From NCBI GenBank assembly GCA_002269645.1, contig NIVC01004982.1, positions 1-29,526 on the forward strand: 29,526 nt of DNA, given 5' to 3'. The notes below the pieces were generated by a model. That model saw only the letters and a program-made list of their open reading frames with translations. It made no database searches and was not told the DNA's origin. Position 1 is the first letter of the stretch. Every line of letters begins with the position of its first letter. Positions 443 to 22,526 of this stretch are shown one piece after another. This stretch comes from Macrostomum lignano. Lineage: Eukaryota. A program made the position numbers and the translations under genes.

Positions 443-3134
443 AGACCTTTTTTTGAGAAAAAAAAGTACATTGAAACGGGTGACCAAATAAGCAAAAATA
501 ATAATTAACAATATGGAAACTAACTAATAAATGCAAACTACACAAAAGATGCTCACACTACACGAGCTCGTAACCTCCGTCGCAGAGCTAAGAAACTCCA
601 CCGCAGAGCAACTAAAACTAAGAGCCCAGCGCAACAAACCGCCTACATGAAGCAATCCATGAGTTTAAAAGTCGTATGGACTCCAAATGAAAAGAATTCA
701 GAAATTTGCAGTTGCCTAAAAATTGTATTTAAAAAGCGCCTTAGAAGTTGCTGGAAATGTAGTTTGTTTCAAGATCTTCGAAATTAATTTGGTGCTTTTT
801 AACCTAGTCCGTTATTAACTTCTAAATTGATTTGAAAAAAGTCCGCTTCTATTTTAGGTGACTCTCCAGTTGATTGCGAACACAGAGAACCGCTCACATG
901 CACCTGCTTCCAACTCTGCAGTTTCTGCCTCTCTTGCCTCCCAGTCTAGCACTTGGCGTCCCTCCCCTCCCTTTGTGGCTTCAGATCTCTTTAATGGTTT
1001 ACCGTAAATTAAATATTAAAAGCATCTTCAGGCCTTGCGCTCGCCTAAAAAATGTAGCCCAGCTCCAGTCTGCTCCCGGTTACCTGTAGTTCTTCTTTGC
1101 GTCATTTTGGACGCTAAAAATATTATTTCTGTTTGGACTAAAATTAGGACTACAAAAAAATGGCGACTGCAATTATCCCCAGCCTCTCCCGACTTCTCCC
1201 AACCCGCCAAAGTTTCATGAGTGGCGACCCTCTCACAATTTGCTGTCTGCATCCAAGCCAGCATTCTGTGGTTCTATCAATAGAATTTGGTTTAGCTAAT
1301 GAAGCTGCATGAGAGGCGCCCAGCTGCAGTGTTGAATTATTAAGATGTATTCAGAAAAGCTTTCTCAGCAAGGCTCATCAAGTTTATACAACAAATTCCA
1401 GCCTCCGGCCCAGAGCAACCACAAAGCAGCGCAGGCTCTTATGGCACCCCTGTTTAAGGGTTAGATGTTAGTAAGATGTTGTTAAATGCTGGTTTCTTAT
1501 AAAGTTTTGCATCTACAAAATCAATATTGCGTATGTGTACGTTTTGAAATGTATAAAAATCATAGAGAATATATTGTACGTATTTACAAGCAAAACATCA
1601 CAAAAACGAATTCAGCAATAGAAAGCCTAAAATTGCTAATTTCAAAATCGCTAATTTTGTGCCAAAAGAATCAAAAGTCTTGCAACATCCGCAAACCTAG
1701 CCCACAAAATGCTTTCTAAGAAATGGTTTCCCTCCCTTGGCACAAGCATTCAAAGCTTTGCAGAGCGAAAGACCGAAATCAGAATGATCGAAAATTATAT
1801 TGACCTACTTGACTTAGCTGCAGGGCTCCGGGCATCCCGATACAGCGGGGTGTTGAAAGCCCATTACGCTGACACCTGCCGACCACGGGCAGCTGGTTTC
1901 CTGGATTGTCGCTCGCCCGGTAGCCCTTGGGTAGCGGACGAGCTGACAGAAATTTTCGGGCCTGAAAACGTCGGATAGGTCCGGGTTTGGACCGAGATAG
2001 GTGAGCCTGTCCTGTCTGTCCGCATTCTCGACGCTGGAGAGGCAGAATCTTCGATATTCTAGATTCCCTAGAGGTGGCGCTGCCTGGCAAAACAGCCACT
2101 GCCTGAAAGGTCCGGATGTCCCTGCAGTTGGGTCCGGCAATCGGTGGCGTCAGCCCACCTCTTCCTGTGCTTGGATGCCACCCACTGGCTAATTCGAGTG
2201 TTGACAACGGCGGTGGGGTAAAAGAACCGGTAAAAAACCAGTAAAAGACACGGTCGAGCCAACCATACGAGTATATAGAAACTTGATTGACCAAGCGTGC
2301 GACCAACGGTACAGATGCTGCAGTGCTGGGTGGTCGCAATTCCGCAACTTATATTTCTACCGCAGCTCAGAGCTCCCACCTTATCGCGGCAGGGTGAACT
2401 GCAGCTCAAGTTAGCTCGTAATTAGGGATACCTTAAAGGTTGCGACGAAAGTTTTCAATTGCGGTACTAACCGGGATCAGTGGGGGCGTAGCGCGGCGCT
2501 CTGATGTGCTCGATTCCAAGTGCAGTCACATTAAATTGGGACTAAATTAAAATCTCGACTTGGGTCTGCTCGCGCACTTATAGGACCCCAAAGGCACAGA
2601 GAGGGTACGAAAGTCAGGGCCGCTGTACATGTGCATGTACACCCTGTGTGAGTACGTATCCGCATGCGCTTGTGCGCCTGCTCAGGACCTCAGCAAATTG
2701 GCCAGTAATGCCTCTGGACGGTTGGTAGAAAGGAAATTTCCTAAATCCCAACAATAGAGGATGCCTTGAACAGAATTCGGAACTTGAAAAATTCACACAA
2801 AAAGGTATGATCCGCATTTTGATAAAAATGTACTCGAAAATACATCATACTTCACTAATCCAAGTGATTGATCGAGTGCAACTTCCACCACTTTCCACAG
2901 CGCGCGCACAATGTCCGCAGTTCATCTGGCAGACCCAGAATCACGCCAGGTGGAGGGATGGGCAGAGGAGGGAGGCAGGGTGGGAGAGGGAGGAAGCATT
3001 TTAGCGAGCAGAGCATGCAGAGATGAAAGCTTTGCTGCAGCTCAGGATGCCACCGGATGAGCAGAGTCCTGCGGGGCGGGAACCCTGTCGCAAGATTAGC
3101 AACGAAAAAAGTACGACCTGATTGACGCTGCCAC

Positions 3135-3907
3135 CAGTAGCGCAACCAGAAATTTGTTGAGTGGGGGCGGATTCTGGAGGGTAAGGACCCAAGGGGGGGG
3201 GCAGATTCTGGAGGGTAAGGACCCAAGGGGGGCGGATTCTGGAGGGTAAGGACCCCAGGGGGGCGGATTCTGGAGGGTAAGGACCCAAGGGGGCGGATTC
3301 TGGAGGGTAAGGACCCAAGGGGGGCGGATTCTGGAGGGTAGGGACCCAAGGGGGCGGATTCTGGAGGGTAAGGACCCATGGGGGGGCGGATTCTGGAGGG
3401 TAAGGACCCAAGGGGGGCGGATTCTGGAGGGTAAGGACCCAAGGGGGGGGCGGATTCTGGAGGGTAGGGACCCAAGGGGCGGATTCTGGAGGGTAAGGAC
3501 CCATGGGGGCGGATTCTGGAGGGTAAGGACCCAAGGGGGGGCGGATTCTGGAGGGTAAGGACCCAAGGGGGGCGGATTCTGGAGGGTAAGGACCCAAGGG
3601 GGGGGGCGGATTCTGGAGGGTAAGGACCCAAGGGGGGCGGATTCTGGAGGGTAAGGACCCAAGGGGGGGGGCGGATTCTGGAGGGTAGGGACCCAAGGGG
3701 CGGATTCTGGAGGGTAAGGACCTATGGGGGCGGATTCTGGAGGGTAAGGACCCATGGGGGCGGATTCTGGAGGGTAAGGACCCAAGGGCGGCTCTGCATT
3801 TTGGCGAAAATTCGCTTTGTCCCCCCTTTGATTTTCTTTTTGGTCTCCGCCTATAATGGGGGGGGGTGGGCAAACTCCAACCGCCCCCCCCCCTGGTTGC
3901 GCCACTG
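3135..3907. mobile_element. Non-autonomous hAT-like DNA transposon (773 bp) carrying an internal minisatellite
   Basis: TIRs CAGTAGCGCAACCAG (3135-3149) and CTGGTTGCGCCACTG (3893-3907) match 14/15. A perfect 8-bp TSD GCTGCCAC lies at 3127-3134 and 3908-3915. CAG termini with an 8-bp TSD are characteristic of hAT. No transposase. Confidence 0.85.
3163..3790. repeat. G-rich minisatellite, ~31-bp unit, 20 copies
   Basis: Unit G(n)CGGATTCTGGAGGGTAAGGACCCAA with a variable G-run of about 4-9. It generates the repetitive minus-strand ORFs (GPYPPESAP...). Confidence 0.97.
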
Positions 3908-5344
3908 GCTGCCACCGAGCGAGATTAATTGCGCGACCAATTCTCACATGGCTTCTCCACAGACCCACTTTTGGGGCATAGACAATGAAGAACGAGTCTT
4001 CAGTAGCTGGACTCTCCCGCTGAGGACCTTGATTCAACTCAGAACATATTTCTTTAAATATTCTAAATATTTCAATCTTTACACATCTTTTACTCATTTT
4101 AGAAATACCCTCTGCCAGCTACTGCCAGTAGTTGTAACGGCATGCCCGCAGTAGTTTCTGCCCTACCCCCGTTTCGGTCGCGGAAGCGGGCATGAGTCAG
4201 AGCCGGCGGGCTGCCCCCGATAAATGCCCCCCCCCCCCGGAAAAGAGGCCCAGCCCGATATTGAAGCCAGCGAATGCCTGCCTGCCAACAGCTCTGCTGC
4301 TGAGGCTGGAGCTAAGGGGAATTCGCTACCGCCTTTATGGGTTGCGCGCGCGTTGCTGTTGGCTTGCGCGATTTGTGAACCCCCGGCAGGAACTGCGCGC
4401 AAAGTGCGCGAGCCGTCAGCAGATGAGTCACCCATGCGCTGCCTTCGCAGTCGGGCGCGTTGCGTTCGGTTTAGCGCAAAATTTCGCACTGCCTGCGGAA
4501 AAGTTTTTACTCCGATGACGTATGATTGGCCTCCATTCCGGTCAAACGGAACTGCAAGATGTGCTGCCTAAAGTAAATAATTGCTGTGCTGGTTGACAGA
4601 ACCGCTGCCAATGCAAAACAATGCCAAGGAAGTTTCCTTTTTAACCTTTTTGAACATCTTGTTGAGTGTCAATTCTCTCCTAGCGTTCGTGTGCTTAGAC
4701 ACTGGACTTCGAACTCAGAACTAAGGGGGGGGGGGCATCGAATGCTTCAGCATCAGTGAGGTATTCGAGACATTCCAGCTTCATTTTATGCTCGAAAGTC
4801 GCAAAGGAGAAGGACATCGAGTGACGTCCCGACAGGCTGCAAAATCAATTTCTAAGAACAGGTTTGTGCATGTTGCGATGGAGTTTCTTCTCGTGCTGCC
4901 ATATCGCGTGACGGCCGGGACTGGCGGCATGAGTCACCGCATGGCCGCAGTTTTCTGCATGCTTCGCGGTTTAAAAAATCAGCGCTTCGGCGCAATAAAA
5001 AACTGCCGTGTTGCGCAACCCGACGCGATCGTGACTCAGCCGCGCGTGGCCAGGGCCGAGGCGTCGCTTCTGCATCAAGCTTCATCCCCAAGTCATTGTC
5101 CGAATTCCTCTACAACTGGCCGTTTCACTTCGATGAGGAATTTCCTGCTGCAGCACTTGCCGCTCATCCGTCATTCAGATTTGGCATCGGCGGCATTGCG
5201 GCAGAGCTGAACTGACTCGCCAACTGACTGCGGAGGCTGCCGTTTGTTGGCCGATCTGGGAATTCCGGATATCGGGTGGCCATCCGGCCATCCGAAATGA
5301 TCGAAATGGAATTCCGAAACAGGGGATGTCATAAATTTTTTTGA

Positions 5345-6450
5345 GGCCATAGCTTTTCTGTGCGATCATAGCCATTCTGTGTGGTCATAGTCATTCTGTG
5401 TGGTCATAGTCATTCTGTGTGGTCATAGTCATTCTGTGTGGTCATAGTCATTCTGTGTGGTCATAGTCATTCTGTGTGGTCATAGTCATTCTGTGTGGTC
5501 ATAGTCATTCTGTGTGGTCATAGTCATTCTGTAGGGTCATAGTCATTCTGTGTGGTCATAGTCATTCTGTGTGGTCATAGTCATTCTGCGTGGTCATAGT
5601 CATTCTGTGTGGTCATAGTCATTCTGTGTGGTCATAGTCATTCTGTGTGGTCATAGTCATTCTGTGTGGTCATAGTCATTCTGTGTGGTCATAGTCATTC
5701 TGTAGGGTCATAGTCATTCTGTGTGGTCATAGTCATTCTGTGTGGTCATAGTCATTCTGTAGGGTCATAGTCATTCTGTGTGGTCATAGTCATTCTGTGT
5801 GGTCATAGTCATTCTGTGTGGTCATAGTCATTCTGTGTGGTCATAGTCATTCTGTGTGGTCATAGTCATTCTGTGTGGTCATAGTCATTCTGTGTGGTCA
5901 TAGTCATTCTGTAGGGTCATAGTCATTCTGTGTGGTCATAGTCATTCTGTGGGGTCATAGTCATTCTGCGTGGTCATAGTCATTCTGTGTGGTCATAGTC
6001 ATTCTGTGTGGTCATAGTCATTCTGTGTGGTCATAGTCATTCTGTGTGGTCATAGTCATTCTGTGTGGTCATAGTCATTCTGTAGGGTCATAGTCATTCT
6101 GTGTGGTCATAGTCATTCTGTGTGGTCATAGTCATTCTGTAGGGTCATAGTCATTCTGTGTGGTCATAGTCATTCTGTGTGGTCATAGTCATTCTGTGTG
6201 GTCATAGTCATTCTGTGTGGTCATAGTCATTCTGTGTGGTCATAGTCATTCTGTGTGGTCATAGTCATTCTGTGTGGTCATAGTCATTCTGTGTGGTCAT
6301 AGTCATTCTGTGTGGTCATAGTCATTCTGTAGGGTCATAGTCATTCTGTGTGGTCATAGTCATTCTGTGTGGTCATAGTCATTCTGTGTGGTCATAGTCA
6401 TTCTGTGTGGTCATAGTCATTCTGTGTGGTCATAGCTATTCTGTAGGGTC
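5345..6450. repeat. 19-bp tandem repeat, ~58 copies
   Basis: Unit GGTCATAGTCATTCTGTGT, nearly perfect, with recurring ...CTGTAG and ...CTGCGT variants and degenerate edges. Confidence 0.98.
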
Positions 6451-7425
6451 GTACCCATACTGTGGGATCATGGCTACTCATTGGGTTCATGGCCATTCTA
6501 TCGGCGTCATTCCAAAAGGTCATTAGCCTCTTTCACAAGAGATCACACTACCAAGTCTAAAGTGTCATAGCCAGTCTATTAGGATCAGCGCCTTGCTACA
6601 GAGTTACTCCCAGAGGATTTTTTTGAGACAGGCAGCGAGTGTCAGGCAGCCCGAACCGATGGATGAACTGTCGATTTTCGTTAATCATCATGTTATTATT
6701 ATTATTCGAGTTTCAACCTAACACCCACTCAAGGCGGCATTATCCGATCAATTATAAACTCGATTCACTTCGGGCTTTACCGGAACGGCGTGAGTGGCCG
6801 CCCCAGGGGGCACCGGCTCGCTTACTAATTCTGCTGATTACGTAATCACTTGGGCCTCAATACGCTACCAACACACCGGCTAGGGGGGGGGCAGTTGTCG
6901 CACCCCGTGTTAGTCACTTGCGACCCCCAGGTTTACTCATTCTCTCACGGAACTCTCATTGTCAGGGGGAGGAGGGGGTGCAGCGCATGGGCTGCTTTCT
7001 TCCCAAAAGCTGGCAGCTCCCTACCCCCCCCCCCCTGCCCCCGTGACACCGGCGCGCTATGAACAGAATTGCGTCATCTGCCAGTCAAGCGCGTGACTCA
7101 CTGGGCGCAGATTCTTCCTGTCAGCTCGGGGGTGGTCTTTAATCGGCGCATTCTGCGTGGGCAATCCGGGGGGGGGAGATGATCAACCAGATGATAATTC
7201 CATATTTGTGCCGGAGACTCAACTAGTTGGGGTGGAGCAGAACTCAGAGCAATGGCTGAAACGATGCGTGCCTTCTGTGCGAGTCGATGATTTGCATTGA
7301 TTTCTCCAGCAATGAGGGGCAAAGGGGAAGCGGCGCCAACCCCTAATCTTCAGCTCGACATCCTGGCAGCTTTGCACATCAGCATACAATAAAATTTCTG
7401 GCTCCCATTGTGCTTCTGCTAGAAG

Positions 7426-7830
7426 TCTGGCGCTTACTATCAGGCGCCCCTTACTATCTAGCGCTTCTTACGATCTGGCGCCGTTTACTATCTGGCGCCG
7501 TTTACTATCTTGCGCCCTTTACTATCTGGCGCCCTTTACTATCTGGCGCCCTTTACTATCTGGCGCCCTTTACTATCTGGCGCCCTTTACTATCTGGCGC
7601 CCTTTACTATCTGGCGCCCTTTACTATCTGGCGCCCTTTACTATCTGGCGCCCGTAACTATCTGGCGCCCGTAACTATCTGGCGCCCCCTCTATCTGGCG
7701 CTGTTGAATGCCTTTAAAGGAAATATGTTTATAGTTATTCTACCTGACGCACCACTTTCTTTGATCTGGCGCCCCTATCTATCTGGGGCTACTTCCATTC
7801 TGGCGCCACTTCTTTGATGTGGCGCTGTCG
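7426..7830. repeat. 17-bp tandem repeat with degenerate flanks
   Basis: Unit TTTACTATCTGGCGCCC, cleanest at ~7480-7700. It explains ORF 7410-7817 (17-aa periodicity = 3 units). Confidence 0.95.
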
Positions 7831-8754
7831 AATGTCTTTTCAAAGCAAAGTTTTTAGATTTAAGAAAAAGTATTGAACAGTTTTACAATAGGTATTTGTT
7901 TCGAGTGCCAGGCCACAAAAGTGAGTGACCCCGGTTCGCAATAATCCCAAAAGTCAGAGCTGCATTTTTTTAATCCTCCTCTTCCGCTGAGCTGCCTTTG
8001 TGTGACTCAGCTGGCCTTTGTTGCAGCCGCCACGCAAGTCCCGTCGGCACTGAGGTCGGCAGCGGGCGCAGCGGGCGCAGCGCAAGTCCCCCGGCAGTGA
8101 AGAGAGCAGTTGGGGAGGCTCCAGCAAAGAAAATGTTTGCCGAGCAAAATCCCCACGCAAGCTGGCATCCCATAGGGCGGCTCTGAGGCGGAAGGTGAGA
8201 GAAGGGCGAGCGGTGACTCACAAAGGGCGGGGCTGCCGGGATCCTCGCTGCTCACCTGAGCGCCGCCAGCCGACTCTGCCTCTCTCGCGCCCGACCGAGA
8301 TCTGTTGCCAGGCCCCCCCCCAGTAACCTTAATTGACCCCTCGTCCTCTGCCAAACCTCAGCCTGACCGCCTCAAGATTGATTGCGGCAGTTGCGCATTG
8401 CGCAATAGAAAAAATGTTCGCTCGCGAGGGCCGGGTCGCAGCTCCGTGATTTGATTAGTGGCGCCTTCTCTTATCAATATTTGCGGCTCAGCGCCAATTT
8501 GCAATTTCTTCTTTCAGGTTTTGACAGCCGTGACCGAGCAGCCCCCCTCCCGGTGCTGTTGAGCCGAAGCTGAACTGCGGCATTTTCCTCGGATCCCCCC
8601 TCCCGGGATTATGGATTGGGAAATTTCATTTTAGGGAGTGGGGGAACAGAAATGCCAGCTCTGCTGGTGGCGAGTGACTCATCTCGGCCATTGTGCGAAT
8701 TGACTGTCTCGTTGCGGGGTCTCAAATCGGAAGACGGCTTATTCATAATTCACA

Positions 8755-9220
8755 TCTTTGAGACTCATTTAGAGGGGTCAACGGACCTCCCCCTTCATGA
8801 AACTCATTTCGATAACCTCCTCTGACTTGTACTCGCAAAAAGTTATCCCTTCACAGAGATGCAATATGAGGGTCAACGGACCACCCGAAAAACTTATTTC
8901 AATAGGTCAGCGGACCCCCCCCCCGCATTGAGAACTATTTAGAGGGGTCAGTGGACCTCTCCTCACATTCAGAACCATTTGTAGAAGTCAACGGACCTGC
9001 CCTGAGGCTAGTTTAGAGGGGTCAAGGACCTCCCTCCTATTGAGATGATACTCATTAGGAGGGGTCAATGGACCTCCTCCTCTATGAAACGCACTTAGAG
9101 GATTGCCCCACACTTAGGACTTACATCTACGAGTTGCAGAAGGGGTCAATGGACCTCCCCTCATTGGGTCTCATTGAGAGGGTCAACGGGCCCAATTTAT
9201 TAGAGGGGTCAAGGGCCCCA
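8755..9220. repeat. Old, degenerate ~40-bp tandem repeat (about 10 copies)
   Basis: Recurrent core (TTT)AGAGGGGTCAA[C/T]GGACCTCCC preceded by TTGAGACTCA-like sequence. The inter-core segments are homologous to one another. Confidence 0.8.
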
Positions 9221-9732
9221 TGCAAAATCTGGCTCCAGTTGCAGTGTTTCTTCAACTGCAATAATTTCGCACAGGAGGGGGGTGGGGCGGTGCCAGTGCG
9301 TGAGCAGTTTGAGATCAGCTCGGGAGCTTGAGTCAGCGCCCACGCCTCATCCCCAGCGGCGGCACTAGCTTATCAGATCGGCGCCCTGATTATTTGAGCT
9401 GCTGCTGGCGGGAATTAGCAAAAATTAACGCCGTTCGATGGAGAATCTCTGTGAAGCTGCGAACAGCTCAATGGATTATCAGATGGATTATAAAGCCAAA
9501 AAGCGCTCTAAGAGTGAAGCGGTGAGCTGAGTCAGAGGAGCTGAAATTTAGGGCTAAAACTCTGCAATATCGGTGACTCAGAACTTTCAACTCCAGTTTA
9601 TTTAACAGCTGCATCAAATTAATGAATTTTAAGCATGGAGGAGTGCAGGAAAACAACTGGGCTGGGAGTCATAAACACCCAGTTTCAGATGCACCCCGCG
9701 TCACTTCGAATTGCTGCGTCATGCATGAAGTG

Positions 9733-10665
9733 TTTTGGCGCCACCGGGGATTAGCAAAACCAGGGACATTTGGCGCCACCAGTGACATTTTGGCGCCACC
9801 AGGGACATTTTGGCGCCACTAGGGCTATTTTGGCGCCTCCAGGGACATTTTGGCACCACCAGGGACATTTTGGCGCCACCAGGGATATTTTGGCGCCACC
9901 AGGGACATTTTGGCGCCACCAGGGACATTTTGGCGCCACCAGGGACATTTTGGCGCCACCAGGGAGTATTTTGGCGCCACCGGGATATTTTGGGGCCACT
10001 GGGGATATTTTGGCGCCACCAGGGACATTTTGGCGCCACCAGGGACATTTTGGCGCCACCAGGGACATTTTGGCGCCACCAGGGAGTATTTTGGCGCCAC
10101 CGGGATATTTTGGGGCCACCAGGGATATTTTGGCACCACCAGGGACATTTTGGCGCCACCAGGGATATTTTGGCGCCACCAGGGACATTTTGGCGCCACC
10201 AGGGACATTTTGGCGCCACCAGGGACATTTTGGCGCCACCAGGGAGTATTTTGGCGCCACCGGGATATTTTGGGGCCACTGGGGATATTTTGGCGCCACC
10301 AGGGACATTTTAGCGCCACCAGGGACATTTGGCGCCACTAGGGATATTTTGGCACCACCAGGGAGTATTTTGGCGCCACCGGGATATTTTGGGGCCACTG
10401 GGGATATTTTGGCGCCACCAGGGACATTTTAGCGCCACCAGGGACATTTTTTGGCGCCACCAGGGACATTTTGGCGCCACCAAGGACATTTTGGCGCCAC
10501 CAAGGACATTTTGGCGCCACCAGGGATATTCGGATGCCACCTGGGTATTCTGGCGCCACCTGGGTATTTCAGCGCCACCAAGGATAGGGATTAGTTTTGG
10601 CGCCGTCAAGGATATTTTAGAGCCGTCAGGGTGATTTTGGTCTGGATATGGATATTTTAGCGCCA
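9733..10665. repeat. 20-bp tandem repeat, ~45 copies, with higher-order structure
   Basis: Unit TTTTGGCGCCACCAGGGACA. The variant AGGGAGTATTTT recurs at 9961, 10081, 10241 and 10360. It explains all ORFs called at 9719-10666. Confidence 0.97.
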
Positions 10666-11146
10666 TGCTCGCTTCTTGGCCGATTATATCAATAAAAATT
10701 TGGCGTCATCGAAAGTAGCTCGCGCTATAAAAAGAATCACACTAGCTATTATCACATTCAATTAATAATTGTCAGTTGCGGTCTCCGGCCCTGGACTGAC
10801 TGAGCACTCACTGCGCTCACTGGCCGCCGCCCCCGCCCGCACTGCACGGCTCAGCCCCCCCGCCCCAGCTTAGTCAGTTTTGGGGTGTCAGAGGTCGCCG
10901 AGGCACCCCATGCAGTTGGAATTCGCTTTGTTTAGCCATGTTAATCATCGCGGCTGCCGGCCTGTTCTGCTGTTGAGTCACTCGAGCTGCCGCAAACACA
11001 TTTCAGACTTGTGGAAGCATGTTAAGGTAAGACGGGGGGCTTCCTACATGACAGAGCAGGTTAGCACTCATCTGATCGTGTCCTAAGCTCGTCTGCTGGG
11101 TTTAAATTCGAGTCAATGAATATTTGTCACTTTTTTGGACATCACC

Positions 11147-11405
11147 GGGAGAGGAGAGGAAGAGGGAAGGGATAGGAGAGGAGGGAGAGAGCGGAGAGGA
11201 GAGGGGGAGAGGGAGAGGTGAGGGGTAGGGAGAGATAGAGGGAGAGAGAGGAGAGGTAGGGAGAAGAGAGGGAGAGATCGAGGAGAGGGAGATGAGGAGA
11301 GGGGTAGAGAGGAGAGAAGAGTAGAGGGAGGAGAGGCAGAAGATAAGGAGAGGGGAGGCGGAGTCCGGAGAGAGAAGAAGAAAAGGTGATTAAGAGGAGA
11401 GAGTG
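11147..11405 (+). repeat. Polypurine (GA-rich) low-complexity tract
   Basis: About 260 bp almost entirely G/A (GGAGAGG-like motifs), ~900 bp upstream of the DUSP start codon. Confidence 0.9.
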
Positions 11406-11779
11406 ATTATTAAGAGGCCGCTAAAACAAAGGCCGTCAGCCCGATGATGCAGTCCTGGGCTGCCCCCCAGCCAGCCCCCCATTGTCCGAAACTTCTACTA
11501 AGCAAGTAAAATTGCCCAAAAAATGGAAACTGCCGCCCTCCCCCAGCCGCATCGCAAACAGTTGCGGGCGCTCCGAGGGTCCGCGCGACCCCCGCGGCGC
11601 TTAGCGTAAGTCACCTGCGGGGAGAGGGACAAGCTTAAGAGTTGCGATAAGGCGGCCCCAAGTGGCCAGTCATCTGACTGTTCAATAACTCTGCAATGAT
11701 TCTATTAGTCACCCGCCAGCCACTCAGTCCTAATTGCCGGAGATTTCCGCGGCCTCTCCCGTGTTTAACACGCGCGCCC

Positions 11780-12060
11780 CTTCCGCATTGGGCTGGCGTG
11801 TGTCCTGCGTTATTGAACCTGATTAGTCAGTTGGTCCTGGCGGCCGCGGTAGCAATCTGCTCTGGTTGGCTGGCCGTTGCCTAGCGACCGGCCGGGGAAC
11901 CCCCTGTCTGTCTGCGGCCTGCGCACTGGCTGGCTGAGTCAGCCAGGGGGTGGGGGCGGGGGGGATTCCCCCAAAGGCCCGCCGCCGCCTCCTCCTCCTC
12001 CGCGGGCAGCATAAATTCCCAACTCAGCTCTTCCCCTCTGTTCGCTCCCTAAGCGGAACT
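11780..12060 (+). promoter_or_regulatory. Likely proximal promoter of the DUSP gene
   Basis: GC-rich block with AP-1 (11935), a GC box (GGGGCGGGG ~11953), kB-like GGGGAACCCCC (11894) and GGGGATTCCCC (11961), and TATA-like CATAAAT (~12011). A pyrimidine-rich leader follows, then ATG at 12296. Confidence 0.5.
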
Positions 12061-12295
12061 GCACCGTCTGATTCATAATTTCCTCTCGTTCATCGCGTCA
12101 TCACCGGCTTTGCCGAAGCATCCGCCCTCCCCCCGGTTCTCGAATAAAATCCTCGAGTTCGGACTGAGCCAGACTCTTCTCTTCTTCATCAGTTCGATTC
12201 GAGTCCGGTCATTTTTTCTCTCGAGCGTAGCATCGCCTCAGCAGTGGCAGATAATCGGATTCATCCCTGGTAGCAGCACCCCATCCCGAGTAATC

Positions 12296-15200
12296 ATGCG
12301 ATCTCAGCAGCCGGGCGAGGACGAGAACAGGACCGTTGCGGCCGCCCCGGCGGCCCAGATCGCGCCGGTGGCGAAGAGGGCGCGGCCCGGCCGGCTGCAG
12401 CTCGAGTTTCCGGTGCAGCTTCCGGCGGCGGCGGACTCGGCGGGCCTCGGCTCCCCGCTGAGCCCCATCTCGGCCAACCCCAGCATCCTGGGAGCGCGGA
12501 AACGGAGGAAAGGTAAGCGAAGTCTCGGGCTTGAGATGGAGATTTTGATATGCAGTTTTTTGTTGGATCGTATTGGAATCTCAGACTGAGGTGATGCCAG
12601 TTTTAAGTTTTGAGACACCAGATCCCAGTTTTTAGATGTTAGTTTTGGGTTTGAGAAGTCATTCTCAACTTTTAGGTGTCATTTTTTCGTTTAAAATGTT
12701 CGTTTTGGCACCGAGACGTCAGCTTTGAGTCTGTTGAGTCAAAGTTGAGTCTATGGTGTCAGCTTTGAGTCTGGGGTGTTCAGGTTTAGGTTTAAGATGT
12801 CACTATTTTGATTGAGGTATCAGATTCTGGAGTGTCAAATTTGAGTTTCATGTACCAGGAGTTGAGTTAAAGATATCGGATCGAAGTCACAATGTTGATT
12901 TTGAGATCGCAGATTTGAGGTCTCAGCTTCGATTTTGAGACCGCAGTTTTTTGGAGATCGCAGATTTTATTTTGAGACTGCAGATTTGATTTGGAGATCG
13001 CAGATTTGATTTTGAACAGGCAAATTAGATTTTGAGAACGCAGATTTGGTTTATAACTCACAGCTTTGATTTTGAGCTGGCAGATTTGATTTTGAGACCG
13101 CATATTTTATTTGGAGATCGCAGATTTGAGACCGCAGATTTGATTTGGAACTGGCAGATTTGATTTAGAACTGGCAGATTTGATTTAGAACTGGCAGATT
13201 TGGTTTAGAACTCACAATTTGATTTTGAACTGGCAGATTTGGTTTTGAGCTGGCGAGTTGATTTTGAACTGGCAGATTTGATTTTGAGACCGCATATTTG
13301 ATTTGGAGATCGCAGATTTGAGACCGCAGATTTGATTTTGAACTGGCAAATTTGATTTAGAACTGGCAGATTTGGTTAAGAACTCACAGTTTTGATTTTG
13401 AACTGGCAGATTTGGTTTTGAGCTGGCAGATTTGATTTTGAGACCGCATATTTTATTTGGAGATCGCAGATTTGAGACCGCAGATTTGATTTTGAACTGG
13501 CAAATTTGATTTAGAACTGGCAGATTTGATTTTGAGACTGCAGATTTGATTTGGAGATCGCAGATTTGAGACCGCAGATTTGATTTGGAGCTCGCAGATT
13601 TGAGACCGCAGATTTGATTTGGAGATCGCAGATTTGAGACCGCAGATTTGATTTGGAGATCGCAGATTTGAGACCGCAGATTTGATTTTGAACTGGCAGA
13701 ATTGATTTCGAACTGGCTAATTTAATTATGAAAAAAATTATTTCCGAATAAAATAAATTCTGCTTGAGAAGTCAGTTTGAATTGGAGAGACATCGACTTT
13801 GTTCTAAAAATAAGTAATGAATTTCATGTATCAGTCTTTTGCATGCATGCATTGATTGCCTCAGAAAGTTTTATTTTTAAAATCCCCAACCAGAAAAAAC
13901 CAGTCACCGCTTCCGTCTACTCATTGGCTGCCACTCCCTAAAATGCTGTCATTGCTACTTAAACAAGTAGGCTAGTAGCATGATGCGCACATGACACTAA
14001 AATTGAGGCGAGTTTTTGGAGAAATAGCACAGGTTTTAAGCTAAGCAAAACGGGCAGCAAGCCTCTGCTTATCTACAAAATACGATCGATATAAAGTTAC
14101 AGTATTGCCTCTCGCTGCTGTCCTCAGGCAGAGATAAGACATGCCTTATCAGTGCCAGGCCGCTAGTTCACGAAGTCTTATTTTTACCTTTATTGGTCTG
14201 ATCTTACAAAATCACGTGAGCCCAGCGTGTCCGCCAGACTGTTAGGTGAGGTTTAGAACCAACTGGGCTTATTGCGCAGCTCTTGTGTTCGCAGCATGTT
14301 GCACTTTTGTCCCCTCCTTTAACAATTATCAAAGCTGTGAATCAGGTACCCCAGAATGGCCTGTGTGCTGCCATGCCTGGGGTCTGGCCCGAAGTGAGTC
14401 ACATCACATGACTGGCATTAGGGCTGGTTGAAGTTGTCGGAATTGGCGCGCAATTTTGAGGCTATGCAGTGTGGACCAGGCCACTCTGCCCCCTCCCCCC
14501 ATTGCCCATTGTGCTTGGCAAGCATTCCAGCTATTTACTATGCGCTAGGCGCAGTCAGCATCAACGATTCAATGGCCTGCCTGGCTGCCTTTCATTCTGG
14601 CTCCCATTATCCTGCTCCACTGCTTTAGGCTAAGGCTAAATTCTAGCATGACGTTATAAATGCCTTCATATGCTTCATATGGGCTTATTTTAGGCTACAG
14701 GGCTTAGCGTGCGCAGTGTACAGTCAGCTCCCAAGCACTCTAATAGAAAATGCCAGCTTACCCGCACAATAGTAAACCCACTGACTCAGTTGTTGCCCCA
14801 GCCGAGCCTGTCGCCCTCCTATTGGCTGGCCGCCGTCGCCCATGACGACCTGCCTCCCCCCTCTATCCCTCTATCTACCCTCTCGTGGGGCACAGGGGGC
14901 GATGCTAAAAATAGCCTCAGAGTCACAGTTGTTTTGGCTAAAATTAGCCGTGCCAGAATAAAACTGGTTCAGCTGCCCCCCGGCCCAAGTCCAAGTCGCG
15001 GCTCTGTAGAATCGCAAACGAAGCGGCTTGCAAAGCGTTGACGCAATTTCGTGTGCAAGAATAACCGATATATTTAGTTGGATCTACTTAGTCCGACGGG
15101 GTCACGAAAGCCAAACTGGACTCCTCTTTAGCTTAAGGATCTGCGGATCGCCCCATTCCCCAAGCCAAACTGCATTTACTCCTCCAAGCCACAATCATTC

Positions 15201-16923
15201 GCTCTCAAAGACAAGATTTCACCTAATTCTCACCGGGCCTAACTCAACTGAGCATGGTGCTGTGCCGCAAAAACCGTCCATGTGGTCTCAAGTTTAGCGG
15301 CGGAGGCGGCGGCGGCAGCGGCGGCTGCACCGGTGGCCAGGCCACGGCCCCGGTGGTCAGCCAGCAGCTGCCGGCTGGCTGCGGCCTGCAGGCTCACCTG
15401 GCTGCTAAGCAGGGCTCGAACCAACGCCTTTCAGGCAGCGGCTTGCACGAGTTCCATTCTTTGGCCGGCAAGCAGCAGCCGACGGCGAACGGCAACAGCG
15501 AGGACTGCGACGACGAGGCCGCTATGGAAACGGCTCAGCTGCCCAACGTGGGCCCAACCTGCGTGCTGCCCCATCTGTACATTGGCTCGCAGGCTGATGC
15601 CCTGGACGCTGAGGTCATGCAGCGCTTCGGCATCACGCACGTCATCAACGTGAGCATCTCCTGTCCGCAGTCGCAGCACGTGCCAGACAGCAACTTCCTG
15701 CGGATCCCGGTTAACGACGGCTACACAGATAAACTGCTGCCGCACTTCCAGCGGGCTTTCAACTTTCTCGGTGAGTTCAGTTCGGGAGGAGCCGCTCGCA
15801 CGCTCGGGCGGGGGGGGGGAGATTTCGGACATTTTAAGCGAGACGAAGACTTCAAATTCATTTTTCTAACAAATAAAGCGCCCTCGCTTAGCGAATTCTC
15901 ACAGCCATAGGAAACATGAAGTAGCAGTGAAAATCTGCTAATTCTTTCTACAGGCTTCCATTCAGAGATTTTTTATATCGCTGATATTGCGCGAATGACG
16001 CGCACCGCTTGGCAATCGGTGACTCATTTGGTCAGTGATGCAGAGCTAGGCTGCGTTTGACCTTTGCGCAATCAAATTCCCAATACTTTATTGCAAGCCC
16101 GGCCGGCCCACCCTGCCCCGGCCATTAGCGGCCTGCCGATGGGGCGGGCTGAATGCCGATGCAGGGCGTCGCTGAGTCACCGCGGGCCTGCAGTTCCGCC
16201 GGACCGCATGGGCCAGGGCGGGATCCTCAGATCCGTCATTGTTTTACCCACACCAGCCTCTTGCCAGGGTTACTAAGGAGATTTTCTTTCTCTCTAACTC
16301 AGAACGCGTGCGCGAGTCCTCCGGCCGCTGCCTGGTCCACTGCCTGGCAGGCATCTCCCGGTCGCCGACTCTCTCCATTGCCTACATCATGAAGCACAGG
16401 TGCATGAGCCAGGATGAGGCGTACAGGTATGCGTCATTTCTCATTTCTCACCGTCATTTTTCGAATGCGATTTAATTGACAGGCCCATTGCAATTTTGCC
16501 CGCCAACCATCCCGATGCTCTGGCAGATTCGTAAAACAACGCCGGCGCCACATCTCGCCGAACTTCAACTTCCTTGGCCAGCTGCTCGAATTCGAGCGCC
16601 AGCTCAGGCGCTCAGGCGAAGCAGCGGCCGCGGGGGAGCGGCCCGAGGCGAAGCGTCAGCGGACCAGCGACCGCAGCCCCACCAGCGCACTCTCGCAGCT
16701 CAGCTTCGGCGTCGTGCCCACCGGTGGCAGCGAAATCATGGTCAGACGGCCGAGGAGCGTCCTCATCCAGGGCGACGGCGTCGTCGGCGGCGGCATCAGC
16801 GGCCCCATCTGGGAGCAGCCTGTCCGGCGGAGCCGGTCCTCCGACGCCTTCCTGGACCTCGAAGACGAGGCTGTCCGGTCCTGCGAGGAAACGGCTGTAG
16901 GCCCGGTGGCCTGCCTGTCCTAG
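12296..16923 (+). CDS. DUSP8/16: Dual-specificity MAP kinase phosphatase, DUSP8/DUSP16 (MKP7/puckered)-like; ~357 aa in the best model
   Basis: Exons 12296-12512, 15435-15770 (phase-compatible acceptor CTTTCAG; the frame is open from ATG 15254), 16303-16426 and 16527-16923 total 1074 nt, in frame, all GT-AG. The catalytic domain is clear: GPTCVLPHLYIGSQ, IPVNDGY (general acid), VHCLAGISRSPT, FVKQRRRHISPNFNFLGQLLEFE. The catalytic exons are secure; how exon 1 joins is less certain. Confidence 0.9.
12550..13730. repeat. Degenerate 14/20-bp composite tandem repeat in DUSP intron 1
   Basis: Interleaved units GCAGATTTGATTTTGAACTG and GCAGATTTGAGACC/GAGATC, most regular at ~12900-13720 and decaying into TTTGAG-rich sequence on the 5' side. 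Confidence 0.92.
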
Positions 16924-19460
16924 CGGGCTCTTCTTCCAGAGGCAGGAAACAGAAATCTTCCTGGCGAACTCCCGAACTCTCCGCTTGCGCTGTGCCTGTG
17001 CGAACCTGAACTCCCCTGTACGGTACGAAGGCCGCCTTCCCGCCTTGCATGGCATTCGCAACGCCTGTTACTGCAGTCCCCCAGTGTGTCTGTTCCGTTG
17101 TCATGCTTTATCCCCGTCTGCCTTTGAATCCTGCGCGTTCTCTCTACGGCTGGGCCCTGCACCCGACGATCCCCCGCCCCGCTGCGAGAGTTTTGGCTCG
17201 AAGGCATTGCGGCAGTTGCGCTTTCCAAATGAAATAATTGAATGCACACTTAAGCTTCGAAACTTGTTCTGAAGATACCTGGTGAATAAAGTGCCACGCA
17301 TTCAGACCTTGCTTCACACCACAGATGTACTTTTATGCTTAACCAGAAATCCGCTGGTGCCAGTCGAGCCAGACCTCCCCAGCCCCGGTTTATCCCTCGC
17401 CTGTACAATGAATGGTGCAGGTAAACTGTTGGGTGCAGGTGGGGAACTGCTTTTATTGTCTGTACAAAGCTCATTAAGCTGCACCCGGCTGCACTACAGA
17501 AGCATTGCTTGTGCCATCAGAACTGTCGTCTGCTGCCCTGGCTGCAGTGCCAACGAACTCCTCGCTACAATATATTGATAATTCTAAGAAAGTAGTTATC
17601 ACTAAGCATATGAAACGTTTCTGCTGTTAATTGTGGATTTAGTTCACTCTTTGGTAGTTTTGACTGTTACGAGCGTATGACTGTAGATTTTCTATAAAGC
17701 GCTCTATATTGGCGTGGGTCGCAGCTCACTTAAAAATGATCGATTAACTGTCAATCTTGAGAACTTTTCGCCCCCCGGCCCCCCCCCCCCAAGGTAAAAT
17801 GCTTGAGCATGTTAGAGGTAGACCTCTGCAGAGCTGGGGCATCGTCAAACTGCATGCTGAGTCAACCCTCGAGTTTGAGGTGGGTCAAAGTTGGGTCAGG
17901 GCCGATACTTTACACCATGCCAGCAATTGTGAGTCACGGCGCCTGTAAAATTGAGTCATTTCAGCTAGCTCAAGGTGCGGAGGAACCTCTTACACTATGC
18001 TAGATGTAACATGTAACACACGAGGCCAGGCATTGTGGCAGAGAATATTTTCGAATGCTGCACTGCCGCAACAGTTGCCGATTTCTCGCAGGCGGAGAAT
18101 GAGTCACCCTGAGCAGCCCACAGTTGTCTTTTGTCTGAGAAGGCAGTCAGAGTAAAGTTTTGTGGAGAAACCACTGGTTAAACCAAACGGGACCTGTGTG
18201 AGAAACAAGAATTCTTGATAGCTTCTCAACTGTCGTTCTGAGCAGTTTGCCAAGCAATCAGCGATTGTGTCAAATTCTGCATGATCGCACAGCTGATCAT
18301 GTGATGCGCGCTTTAAACAACTCGAACAGCGCCCGAATAGCTAGCCTGTAACCCTGCCCCCAGTGAGCAGTGCTCGATCTATACTGCTGGAAATTTCTGT
18401 CATGAACTAGCCTCGGCAGGTATGAATGTAGTGCAGGCGCACCTGAGGTAATGGAAAACTGTAAAAATAGAATAGAAGTACTTGAAAAAGAGACATTGTG
18501 CAAGAGCCACAGAGACTAGGTGAAACATACCCTTCGTATTCCGTGTATGCTACTTGTAGTAGAAATGCGGCGCTGTTCTGTTTAAAAGTAGGCGACTTTA
18601 TTTAATAGACAAGCTGAACAGAAATCAAATTTGAACTGCGAGGACGAATTTCGCCGTTGCGTCAAGCAGTAGGGAAGCGGATCGCCTCTGCGGCTTGTGT
18701 GAGAGCTGCGCAATCATTGGAGACTGGCGCCCAAGCTGCATCGCCGGCACGAGCTACTCTCCATCATCAGCTCTGGTCAGCCAGCCATAGAGATTAGCAA
18801 TCAGGCTGGGCAAACAAATCGCGGTCGTGGCTCCGGACACTGCGCAAACACACCGGTCTAGGTCAGGCCGCCTCGTCTCAAGGGGCTCAAATTTGCTCCC
18901 GGAAGGAGCTCGGGGGGGGGGCGGCGAGGAGGCTGCAGCGATCCGCCCGATGTCCAGCGGTGGATTTCTGACCCTGAAATTTGCCTAAGTTAAGATCGAG
19001 ACAGCCGCCCACTCTGTTTCATGCGGGAGTTCCCAGCTCCCAGAATGCAGGCGGATATTTTTGCTGCTGAGACACCGGCAATATTTGCACCCCATCAGCC
19101 TCTCCTTAGTAGGAAGTGCAGCCGGATCAAATGAGAGGGGAGCGGCGTATCGGAGCCGAAACCTGAGCTCCGTGTCTACTCACTTCTTTTTCTGCTTCAC
19201 CTTCAAGCTGCTTTCCAGCTATCTGCTCAGCCACTTGCCCTCTCCCTCACCAGCTGCTTCTCATCCCCATCTGCGATTGGCTGCGGCAGCAAATTGACTC
19301 TGCGATGCACATGGGAGGAGGCGGACGGACTGCGATGCAGGGAAAAGCTCTCGAGCCGGGACTAAGCTGCTCGAGCTTGAGTTTCAGCTGAGGTGTAATG
19401 TAATTAGCCACATCCAGCAGCTAGAAACGGAACTCCCAGTAGCATTGAGCGAAATCTGTC

Positions 19461-22400
19461 ATGCAGCGTCAAGACATCGCAATCGTGGTCCTCTGCTCGC
19501 TCCTCGGCTTTTTTGTCTGCGCTGGGATCCTCGCCTTTTTCTGCTGGCGTCGCCGAATTACTTCGAAGTTCGGGCCGCTGCTCTGCAAGGAGTCTGGCCG
19601 AGCTGACAGCAGCGGCTGTGGCGCCAGCGGCCGCAGCGTAGGCGGGGGCTATCGGACTTTCTACTCGTGGCGGCGCCGCTCGCTCTCGGGCAGCACCGAG
19701 ACGGAGGGTCTCTCGGAAGGGGCAGCTGGCGTTCCTTCAAGCTCGGCGACGACGGAATCCCCGCTGCATCTGACGGCAGGGCGAAGCAACGAGTGCCCGG
19801 CGACGCTGTCTGGCGAAGGTGCCATGAGGTACCTGCGCCGTCAGCGCCGCTCTTCGTCCTTCAACGATCTGCACCGGCCAACGGATGGCGACGCTCGCCG
19901 CGAGGAAGCTGCTTGGGCCGAGTTCGGCCTCGACCCGGCGCTGTACTTGTCCGACGAGGCCGCGCACGAGACGTCCCTGGGCAAGCTGTGCGTCTGCCTG
20001 GACTGGCTGCCCGCCAGGGCGCTGCTGATCGTCACCGTGGTGAGCGCTCGCTGCCTCGTGCGTTGCACGCCGCGCAACACCGGATTTTTCTACGTGACCC
20101 TCCGGCTGAGCGGGCCTCACGGCGACGGTCACAAGCGCAGCACCCACGCTGTCTGCGCCGCCTGCAACCCCCGTTTCGACAGGCAGTTCAGCCTCCCCTG
20201 CCAGCCGGACCAGCTGAGCCAGGCCGGTCTGCTTCTCAAAGTCAAGGAGAAAGTTACGGTGGGCAAGCCTCGCCTAATCGGAAGCTGTATCCTGCAGCTG
20301 GGCTCCCTCGGTGACCTCACGCGAAAGGAGATTTGGCGAGACCTGCAGCCGGAGGTGAGCCCCAGTCCCCATACGTCTCTCTTATCTTCTCATCCCAGTT
20401 TTGCATCCCCAGTCGGAAAGCCCCTGCTGTAATTTTTTATCCTCTGCTAACTCACGAGTCGCGAGTTGCCGCCTCAGCTGCTTCCATCAGTCTGCACTTT
20501 ATAGCGTTTCAAAAAATCTTTTTTTACAGGTTGGCATCGGGCAGAAGGCAGGGGTAAAAAGGTGAGGAACTGCTGGATGGGGAAGCCAAACTAAAGCAGA
20601 AGCCGCGAGTAGCCTCAGGCGGAAAGTTACCCTCCTGCCGGCCCCCCCCCCCCCCCCCCCGATGGATCGTACGCGTTGCAGCAGTCAACTACTCTGTCCT
20701 GCATCCCCTTTCATTTATGAATTCGCAGAGGAGGCTCGGCAGGGGATTTCGTGACTGAATGAGCTGAATGGGAGGCGAAAAGCCGGCATTAAAAGGAAAG
20801 AGCGGGGTGGATTCCTGACGAACTGAAGAACAAATGGAGTGGGCGGATCCACGACTCCGAGGACGGGTTTTAGCGGGGGCACCGCCTCTCTGCGGCCCCC
20901 AGAGCGGTTTGGGAAAAAACGAAAATCAATGCTGCTCTCAGCCCGCCTTTGTCTCAAAGGCCGTTCGCTCATCGCACAGGTGCTTTGCCAGCGGCCGCTG
21001 ATCGCCTTTGACTGTCGCTTTACGGTCAATCACTGCTGAAAGGCTATTTTCATCGTTTGACATTTTCACGAATAGTTCATTACTTTGAAAGGGCCGTACG
21101 GGGGAACAGGGGCTGGCTTCGAAATTCAGGACGCTAAGCCTCACGTGGGATGAGGGGCTTCTGGACGTCAAAAAATCCGCAATCTATATGGAACTAACTG
21201 GCCTGCATAATTTCACTGCGGACCTTGACAGTTCAGCGGACTGATTTTCCTTGCTAATGGTGGCCATGTTTTTCGAAGATAAGAGCTGCTTGCTTGCTCA
21301 AAGAGGAAATTTTTCTGTTTTGCCTGAGGAATTTGTAATTACTGAGCTCTGCTGGCGGAGCCCATCCGATGCATCTTTTTACAGAGTCGGATTTCGAGGC
21401 GTCCCAGGCGCGGGGATTTCAGGACGCTTTTATGTCCGTGATTTGTTTCTGCCTACATCTGTAGCCCTATTGACATGCCTTCAGAGGCAACATACTCGCG
21501 CTCCGCTTCCACAGACATGCCTGCGTGCTGCATCTCAGGTTTTGGTCTCTCTCTCTCTCTCTCGTTGTCTTAGGACGCAGGGAGCAATATTTCTTTAGCC
21601 TCCCAAGCTTTTGTGTAAATTTTTCTTTTAAGACACGCGCGACTAATGCGGCTAGTGGCCTTCCGAAATCCCCCCAGCAACCGCCCAGCGGCCCTCCAGC
21701 GCGAATTCACATGTCCTTGAGCTACAGCGGATCGCGTCGCATTCTCCTGGTTGGTCTGCTCGAGTGCCGCGATCTCAAGGTCAAGGACACCGACTGTGAG
21801 TGATGATGGCAGCTGGGTTTTCCCAGTCTGGGCTGGTGTCGGTGCAGATTTATGCAGTGGGCTTGCAGATTTATGCAACAGTATCGCAGTATCGCAATAT
21901 TTGAGCTGGCAGTCACAAAGCATTTGGCTCTGGCGACTCAGCCAAGCGAAATGGCGGGAAGTGAGCTCGCCCATTGCGCTTGTCCAGCCGACTAGAAAAA
22001 GTCCTGTCACTACCCAACCCCAGCTCATAAACAATGACTCGAGCTTTGATTAAGGAAGGCGGTCCGTCAGGAGATCCCAGACTAGGGAAAGGGACGTGAG
22101 CGCATCCGCTTCGCATATCCTGGAAAACTGAAGCTTACTCACGTGGGCAAAATAGCGGGCACAGAAGATATTTTGCTGCAACAGAACGCCTCTATAAATT
22201 TGCATCCCGCAGCGGCCGTGTACCTCAGGGCCAGCATCATGGCCAAGGAGCGGACTGTCAAGACAAAGAAGACCCCGCTAATTAAAGAGGCCCTGGCCAG
22301 CCCCAGCATTCGAGAGGAGCTCGCCTTCCAACTGGCACAGGATGTCACGGATGAAGTCTACTTGTTCGTGCTGATCTGCGCCAAATCGAAGCGAGGCTCG

Positions 22401-22526
22401 CACCGCCTGCTCGGCAAGACGGTGGTCGGGCCCGTCCGCTACGCCCAGGGCAGCGGCGTCGACCAGTGGAACGACTGCTTCCGTAACCAGCCGAGCATCG
22501 TTTACCAGTGGCACGACGTCTACTGA
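19461..22526 (+). CDS. Synaptotagmin-like protein (N-terminal TM, linker, C2A, C2B), atypical/Ca2+-independent type, 456 aa
   Basis: Exons 19461-20354, 21633-21795 and 22213-22526 total 1371 nt, with phases 0 and 1 matching and GT-AG junctions. Hydrophobic segment IAIVVLCSLLGFFVCAGILAFFC is followed by WRRR. C2A: LGKLCVCLDW...LIVTVVSAR...NPRFDRQFSL...LIGSCIL...EIWRDLQ. C2B: RIHMSLSY...LLVGLLECRDL...VYLRASI...LLGKTVVG...QWNDCFRNQ...QWH. Confidence 0.9.

Follow-up and report, generated by a model that had tools for sequence, protein, structure and literature searches.

Contig NIVC01004982.1 of the free-living, regenerating flatworm Macrostomum lignano (assembly GCA_002269645.1) carries a gene for a dual-specificity phosphatase (DUSP) of the DUSP8/16 type and, over about 14 kb that include this gene, a crowd of TGASTCA heptamers, the motif of activator protein 1 (AP-1) sites or TPA response elements (TREs). 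We analyzed positions 1-29,526 of the forward strand, and "the window" refers to this whole stretch. The question raised by the locus is whether the sites form a control region by which a mitogen-activated protein kinase (MAPK) pathway would induce the phosphatase that ends its own signal, as a first-pass annotation of the window had proposed. We conclude that the motif excess is real and that it is probably functional. With a probability of about 0.6, the 14-kb stretch is a cis-regulatory domain of the DUSP8/16-type gene that is made up of numerous high-affinity TREs and gives MAPK negative feedback.

Excess of TGASTCA sites at the phosphatase gene

TGASTCA was searched as TGA(C/G)TCA. The reverse complements form the same pair, so each site was counted once. 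The pattern search found 23 sites in the window, of which 22 were within 4193-18106 and one was at 27184. The coordinates given by the first-pass annotation were reproduced exactly, including its five clusters and six single sites, and its expectation of 1.7 sites at equal base frequencies was also correct (13,914 x 2/16,384). The density of 1.6 sites per kb, or about 2 per kb of DNA outside the tandem arrays, was the highest of the eight loci compared. The limits of the domain were drawn from the sites themselves, and the binomial P values for inside versus outside are optimistic for this reason.

Shuffles preserving dinucleotide composition were used to estimate the number expected by chance. 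In shuffles of the whole window, 3.5 +/- 2.0 sites were obtained with a maximum of 11, and none of 100 reached the observed 23. When 4150-18150 was shuffled alone, the expectation was 1.81 +/- 1.36 with a maximum of 7 in 500, against 22 observed. The remaining 15.5 kb contained 1 site, with 1.81 expected. The excess was 6.6-fold overall and 12-fold inside the domain, the most extreme of the loci compared, and it was sharply bounded. With the tandem arrays masked, TGASTCA ranked first of 5204 canonical 7-mers for over-representation in the domain, followed by GAGTCAC, which is an extension of it; outside the domain its rank was 5525 of 6366. Control pairs of 7-mers with one mismatch (n=19) occurred 0-5 times each in the domain, indicating that the exact consensus, and no class of similar composition, carried the excess.

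The 25-nt flanks differed from site to site, and a repeat scan of the window found no dispersed repeat family over any site; the families detected were tandem arrays or lay off the sites. Two checks of the kinds that the first-pass annotation had named, control 7-mers within the domain and dispersed repeats within the window, agreed with its proposal. These results bear on the explanation that the sites have no function and that the excess is a by-product of biased mutation, of base composition at the locus, of turnover of minisatellites or of a genome-wide repeat that went unrecognised. Minisatellite arrays are unusually frequent in the domain, and the site at 12735 is inside a short tandem repeat, the other units of which read TGAGTCT. 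The earlier statement that the sites avoid the near-perfect tandem arrays, which do exclude sites, is qualified by this short imperfect 20-bp repeat. In addition, the background consisted of flanks and composition models, and close copies of the locus give no conservation signal. Nevertheless, an origin without function is highly improbable in view of the maximum of 7 sites in 500 shuffles, the lack of enrichment of one-mismatch variants, the dissimilar flanks, and the same excess at an unalignable paralog and at nematode and annelid orthologs, as described below.

The bases next to the core were analyzed in the window and in the paralogous locus together. At position -1 of the half-sites (n=62), G was favoured (26/62, P = 0.003) and T was disfavoured (7/62), beyond the prediction from composition. 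The cAMP response element (CRE) TGACGTCA was absent from all regions and half-CREs were not enriched. Within +/-75 bp of the 31 sites of the two M. lignano loci, no partner motif recurred in both. For antioxidant response elements (AREs) and Maf recognition elements (MAREs), we took TGASTCA with a GC flank (TGASTCAGC), or TGCTGASTCAGCA for a full MARE. If many of the sites were such elements, bound by CNC/Nrf-small Maf or Bach/Maf, the domain would report oxidative or xenobiotic stress. A GC flank was present on 7 of the 22 window sites (8/44 flanks against about 8% expected, P about 0.01-0.02) and on 2 of 9 sites in the paralog; moreover, the site at 11935 forms a perfect GCTGAGTCAGC palindrome, the only full one in the window, and ARE and TRE are distinct yet overlapping elements. 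On the other hand, 15 of the 22 sites had no GC flank, the extended MARE half TGCTGASTCA was found only once per locus, and G at -1 (GTGACTCA), a form that differs from the ARE, was the commonest flank. The excess resides in the 7-mer core, and we regard the ARE/MARE explanation as quite unlikely.

The sites were distributed asymmetrically along the gene: 16 of 22 were upstream (-10.8 to -0.26 kb), 2 were in intron 1 and 4 were 3' of the gene. The domain had been described as wrapped around the gene, a description that does not fit an mRNA 5' end at about 15043. As had been claimed, no site was found in the coding exons of the DUSP gene, and the sites ended before the neighbouring gene. The 3' cluster follows the poly(A) signal at a distance of 0.55-0.8 kb, and 1.35 kb separate it from the ATG of a C2-domain gene at 19461. 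All coordinates are collected in Table 1.

Table 1. Positions of TGASTCA sites, parts of the DUSP gene and the neighbouring gene in the window.
Feature	Position	Strand	Remarks
Distal cluster of 4 perfect TRE/AP-1 sites (4193, 4424, 4930, 5032)	4193-5038	.	Left limit; ~10-11 kb upstream of mRNA start
Single TRE, gTGACTCAc	7094-7100	.	Between two minisatellite arrays
Cluster of 3 TREs (8003, 8214, 8675)	8003-8681	.	All GTGACTCA; all three present in the 93%-identical copy L001
Cluster of 3 TREs (9329, 9528, 9574)	9329-9580	.	9329 and 9528 with MARE/ARE-like GC flanks
Single TRE	10974-10980	.	
TRE (site 11935) within perfect 11-bp palindrome GCTGAGTCAGC	11933-11943	.	T-MARE-like core
TRE within short imperfect 20-bp tandem repeat	12735-12741	.	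Repeat at 12718-12779
Two promoter-proximal TREs (14395, 14782)	14395-14788	.	~650 and 260 bp before the inferred mRNA 5' end
Inferred 5' untranslated region (UTR), co-linear with the genome	15043-15253	+	Alignment of transcript L005
DUSP coding exon 1	15254-15770	+	N-terminus MVLCRKNRPCGLKF, low-complexity linker with vestige of rhodanese C-terminus, first DSPc half
Two TREs (16020, 16173) in coding intron 1	16020-16179	.	
DUSP coding exon 2	16303-16426	+	Active site VHCLAGISRS
DUSP coding exon 3	16527-16923	+	SPNFNFLGQLLEFE motif and C-terminal tail; stop TAG 16921-16923
Likely poly(A) signal AATAAA	17285-17290	+	Sole AATAAA between DUSP stop codon and next gene
3' cluster of 4 TREs (17858, 17930, 17952, 18100)	17858-18106	.	
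Neighbour gene: N-terminal transmembrane (TM) segment and two C2 domains	19461-22526	+	Right limit of domain; no TRE

Gene model and subfamily of the phosphatase

The coding sequence of the DUSP gene spans 15254-16923 on the + strand, with three exons that were read directly in the sequence. Its 1038 nt comprise 345 codons and a stop, and the spliced product of 345 aa is 99% identical to M. lignano BOX15_Mlig009817g1. The gene has only two introns, intron 1 of 532 bp (15771-16302) and intron 2 of 100 bp. The pair of sites at 16020-16179, previously assigned to intron 2, is therefore in intron 1, and no support was found for the additional upstream exon that the earlier numbering implied.

The protein start at 15254 is annotated and supported by transcripts. 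An in-frame stop is located at 15224, upstream of the ATG, and in-frame stops also precede the ATG in two transcript contigs, both intron-less, that come from other Macrostomum species. In one transcript from a related species (L005), the first 131 nt align to 15043-15178 of the window. From these stops and this alignment, the 5' end of the mRNA was placed near 15.04 kb, without a 5' intron. If the AATAAA listed in Table 1 is the poly(A) signal, the 3' UTR is about 0.37 kb long; the transcription unit is about 2.3 kb. The 5' UTRs of another transcript (L004, 1-260), of L005 (1-228) and of the window (15043-15178) have in common a conserved block, AAACTGGAYTCCT...TTAGC. The L004 5' UTR also has two copies of TTTTTGCGCAA, each containing the palindrome TTGCGCAA, which we take to be C/EBP/PAR-bZIP-like.

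To assign the phosphatase to a subfamily, its catalytic domain was compared with profiles and structures. Pfam PF00782 (DSPc) matched both catalytic exons (37.8 and 54.9 bits), and the active site VHCLAGISRS in exon 2 carries the HCxxGxxR(S/T) signature. Among PDB structures, the catalytic domain scored 185.9 bits with DUSP16, 172 with DUSP8 and 128 with DUSP10, and 126 bits or less with DUSP2/7/5/1/6/4/9, which are the ERK-selective and nuclear MAPK phosphatases (MKPs). The best named database matches were DUSP8/16, and many nematode DUSP8/16-like proteins were among the best matches. DUSP16 and DUSP8 are clearly the closest to this catalytic domain. DUSP8, DUSP10 and DUSP16 form the JNK/p38-selective group (PMC6227380), and by this kinship the flatworm enzyme would prefer JNK/p38.

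Classical MKPs are defined by an N-terminal non-catalytic domain that carries a kinase interaction motif (KIM) (PMC6227380). This rhodanese/KIM half is missing from the 345-aa protein, for which the precomputed Pfam annotation listed PF00782 only. Neither tblastn nor our own profile built from 44 homologs found a rhodanese/KIM exon in the 15 kb upstream of the DUSP gene. The profile had no match in the window, yet it scored 65.8 bits on an upstream exon of the paralog L003. What remains of the rhodanese in the protein is its C-terminal end, SGSGLHEFHSL, where homologs have GGFxxF. Like mammalian DUSP8 and DUSP16 (PMC6227380; PDB 4YR8, 4JMK), the flatworm protein has the DSPc domain, the HCxxGxxR active site and the SPNFNFLGQLLE(F/Y)E motif; unlike them, it lacks a Pfam rhodanese, and a KIM exon could not be recognised within that upstream distance. 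By its sequence, the protein is an atypical, truncated member of the DUSP8/16 subfamily, a short form. The earlier label of a JNK-type MAPK phosphatase fits its catalytic domain; for the protein as a whole, which is without the rhodanese/KIM half, this substrate preference is putative.

The N-terminus MVLCRK(N/F)RPxxLxF (15254-15295, residues 1-14) was invariant in six Macrostomum sequences, including orthologs and paralogs. By inspection, MVLCRKxRPxxLxF resembles a MAPK docking D-motif, with basic residues, a spacer and hydrophobic-x-hydrophobic. This N-terminus might stand in for the absent KIM. How an MKP docks on its kinase without a canonical KIM becomes a question that the rhodanese-less short form raises.

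Recurrence in copies, an old paralog and other phyla

Two more genomic copies of the locus, L001 and L002, are present in the same assembly, with 93-97% identity to the window. Of the 17 sites that L001 covers it keeps 16, namely 13 of 14 in mapped blocks and the sites 10974, 11935 and 12735 by position in a separate block, and L002 keeps 7 of 8. The only site that differs among the three copies is 17858-17864, with TGAGTCA in the window and, in L001 and L002 alike, TGAGGCA.

A more distant comparison was provided by the Mlig006006g1 locus (L003, NIVC01001575.1), an old paralog. Only the DUSP exons (69-73% identity) and one inverted C2 exon aligned between L003 and the window. Because the alignment was limited to exons, we consider that the two derive from an old segmental duplication with inversion and that the non-coding DNA has diverged beyond recognition. 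Protein alignment indicated that the DUSP duplication is older than the other Macrostomum species sampled. L003 contained 9 TGASTCA sites, all in 3773-11949, and none in the other 13.2 kb. Eight of them were within 6.3 kb upstream of the ATG and one was just 3' of the gene. Shuffles of L003 gave 1.1 +/- 1.0 sites with a maximum of 5 in 500, and TGASTCA ranked second of 4222 7-mers there.

We also examined DUSP8/16-type genes of other phyla, each with 10 kb on either side, and compared the counts with the expectation from dinucleotide composition. In the nematode Steinernema carpocapsae 14 sites were observed where 2.8 were expected, and 11.7 kb around the gene held all of them. The annelid Owenia fusiformis had 17 sites against 5.8, Pinctada 19 against 10.4, and Caenorhabditis auriculariae 7 against 4.8, with 7/7 inside the gene span. 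The mite Panonychus had 3 sites (4.0 expected) and the tardigrade Hypsibius had 5 (4.6 expected). One-mismatch controls stayed at 0.7-1.3 times expectation in every locus. The TGASTCA excess recurs at DUSP8/16 genes of flatworm, nematode and annelid. Its presence both at a paralog that diverged long ago and at some of the orthologs from other phyla argues for function.

Some further features were noticed in these loci. At L003 1440-1577 there is an unannotated exon-like open reading frame (ORF), MVASCFYAQLLIIDSRSLLDFNLSCIRTAINVCCSRLVKRRLQQGK, which ends in the consensus donor AAG|GTGAGC and is the part of L003 that the profile of the N-terminal rhodanese/KIM region of DUSP8/16 matched at 65.8 bits; a weaker rhodanese-like piece is at L003 4885-5169. 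The exon lies 8.4 kb upstream of the annotated ATG, with AP-1 sites between it and the catalytic exons, and no counterpart was found in the window. Direct splicing of this exon to the ATG exon was considered by inspection and rejected, as there is no in-phase acceptor directly before the ATG; either intermediate exons or a relic could account for it. Downstream of the paralogous DUSP gene, degenerate fragments of non-long-terminal-repeat retrotransposons were seen at L003 13457-14422 (-) and 16456-17250 (+), one being the YADD region of a reverse transcriptase and the other resembling by eye a part of an endonuclease domain. The flank bearing these fragments has no AP-1 site.

In Steinernema (L008, CM016762.1), the public annotation treats the DUSP8/16 (vhp-1-like) gene as two, a rhodanese 'gene' of 167 aa and a catalytic 'gene' of 593 aa, at L008 2082-2399 and 10001-12162. 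Ten of the 14 sites are between the rhodanese and catalytic exons and four are just 3' of the gene, a layout that matches that of L003.

In both the paralog and Steinernema, the TRE-rich stretch separates the catalytic exons from a far-upstream rhodanese/KIM exon. This arrangement gave rise to a tentative idea, to which we assign a small chance: the AP-1-dense region might be an ancient feature of DUSP8/16 genes, an internal stress-inducible promoter/enhancer yielding a KIM-less short phosphatase. In Macrostomum the inducible short form, with its invariant MVLCRKxRPxxLxF N-terminus, would have become the main or only product. The gene in the window would have shed the upstream exon, and what had been an intron would now be an AP-1 control region of 11 kb.

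A candidate feedback circuit

If the domain acts as a feedback element, the following steps would be expected. Injury or stress would switch on a MAPK cascade, most likely JNK. Phosphorylated basic leucine zipper (bZIP) dimers of the Jun/Fos type would then bind the distal clusters and single sites, the promoter-proximal pair, the intron 1 pair and the 3' cluster, and occupancy of the TREs would raise transcription of the phosphatase. The phosphatase would dephosphorylate JNK/p38 and end the signal, forming a transcriptional negative feedback. In this scheme the binding bZIP factor, the driving MAPK and the action of the sites on this gene are presumptive, as are the dependence on JNK, as opposed to ERK or p38, and the responsiveness to wounding or regeneration.

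The nearest known system is VHP-1 of C. elegans, a DUSP8/16 homolog. Induction of vhp-1 by injury needs the JNK KGB-1 and the AP-1 subunit JUN-1, and this pathway was called negative feedback by its authors (PMC7935884). Since VHP-1 is induced by injury via JNK and AP-1, the flatworm locus most likely joins a known feedback design. The two share the phosphatase subfamily and, in the proposed logic, the AP-1-dependent induction of a phosphatase that inactivates the upstream JNK. The nematode loci related to vhp-1 (Steinernema, C. auriculariae) also have a TGASTCA excess confined to the gene region. Unlike the C. elegans loop, which is experimental, the flatworm loop is proposed from sequence, and the flatworm protein is short and without the N-terminal rhodanese/KIM half.

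In Drosophila, JNK induces the phosphatase Puckered (PMC3324472), with which the first-pass annotation had compared the flatworm gene. The likeness holds for a JNK/AP-1 target phosphatase that closes a loop and for TREs of the TGASTCA type that read out JNK activity. It is looser for the protein, which scores higher with DUSP16/8 (186, 172 bits) than with DUSP10 (128 bits). Puckered is, we assume, a DUSP10-like fly MKP, and on that basis the comparison is an analogy of circuits and not orthology. AP-1-driven MKP feedback is already known in worms and flies, and the core idea of the first-pass annotation was reasonable.

TRE/AP-1 motifs characterise the chromatin opened by injury in Hydra, and they are required in regeneration-responsive enhancers of killifish and zebrafish (PMC10232395, PMC8049744). 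The flatworm domain resembles these enhancers in having the same core motif in a highly regenerative animal, where AP-1 sites would likewise convert wound signals to transcription. The fish and Hydra enhancers were defined by accessibility and reporters; as a rule, each is a single element that spans a few hundred bp and combines different motifs. The flatworm domain, in contrast, is defined by sequence and is a 14-kb array of homotypic clusters with no detectable partner motif. It had also been called super-enhancer-like. A super-enhancer is defined by chromatin, as clustered enhancers in the top tail of Mediator, BRD4 or H3K27ac signal; what we describe is clustered motifs over about 14 kb.

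Several observations weigh against the feedback reading. The background for the TGASTCA density was 28.7 kb of flanks, containing one site, together with composition models. Given the 93-97% identity of L001 and L002 to the window, and with 87% of all 7-mers kept among the close copies, the conservation of sites in L001 and L002 carries no information. No excess of TGASTCA was found at the mite and tardigrade DUSP8/16 loci, and the feature is therefore not universal. The 3' UTR of the DUSP gene had no AU-rich ATTTA elements of the immediate-early type. The 3' TRE cluster could serve the neighbouring C2 gene. Without the rhodanese/KIM half, which sets the substrate choice of classical MKPs, JNK selectivity is extrapolated from the catalytic domain. 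No literature on AP-1, JNK or this gene in M. lignano was found. Finally, AP-1 is also an output of ERK and p38.

There is a different explanation, in which the AP-1 elements are real and are driven by ERK, p38 or growth factors, with ERK acting through AP-1 on a JNK/p38 phosphatase as cross-talk, or in which they take part in constitutive, tissue-specific enhancer selection. TGASTCA is bound by Jun/Fos whichever MAPK acts upstream, and the sequence cannot discriminate between them. AP-1 has been described as a general enhancer-selection factor as well as a mark of regeneration enhancers, ERK is emphasised in vertebrate injury work, and the absence of the KIM-bearing domain makes the substrate range uncertain and the argument for JNK weaker. 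The only dissected homolog, VHP-1, however, is induced through the JNK KGB-1 and JUN-1, and the catalytic domain is clearly of the JNK/p38-selective subgroup. We give this explanation a real, if minor, chance of being correct.

The locus is mainly of practical value, as a source of compact candidates for injury-responsive elements in a flatworm model open to transgenesis, together with a KIM-less short variant of DUSP8/16. If the clusters are functional, they would be a compact, sequence-defined set of candidate injury/stress-responsive enhancers in M. lignano, to our knowledge the one flatworm model with routine transgenesis. Natural reporters of AP-1/JNK activity could then draw on the promoter-proximal piece of 0.9 kb, or on the distal and 3' clusters of 0.3-0.9 kb. 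Function would also extend to Platyhelminthes the feedback from AP-1 to DUSP8/16 that was shown in C. elegans, and the nematode and annelid counts would then suggest that the wiring is old in protostomes.

The gene that follows the domain had been called a synaptotagmin. Its TM segment and two C2 domains are in keeping with a synaptotagmin-like architecture, although no homolog was retrieved at E <= 1e-3 with the C2-gene query. The gene calls for the other two copies (L001, L002) do not include it. One C2 exon has a 71%-identical counterpart on the opposite strand, downstream of the paralogous DUSP gene (L003 20334-20642, -). Rfam and tRNA scans of the window found nothing, and Pfam gave nothing credible on ten other window ORFs.

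The upstream regions of the window DUSP gene and of its paralog are both interleaved with long minisatellites (15-43 bp units, up to 57 copies), and the AP-1 clusters sit in the unique DNA that separates the arrays. The arrays were at 3163-3792, 5356-6444, 7434-7701, 9759-10584, 11148-11358 and 12914-13717 in the window, and at 176-1317, 1976-2313, 3120-3398, 5168-5791 and 6269-6758 in L003. A purine/pyrimidine microsatellite (GGAGA or CTCTCC) was present in both paralogous upstream regions. The 20-bp repeat GTCAGCTTTGAGTCTGTGGT (12718-12779) contains near-TRE copies, TGAGTCT, and one perfect TRE. It has TGTGGT and GTCA elements in common with the 19-bp array unit TTCTGTGTGGTCATAGTCA (5356-6444), and the two repeats may be related satellites.

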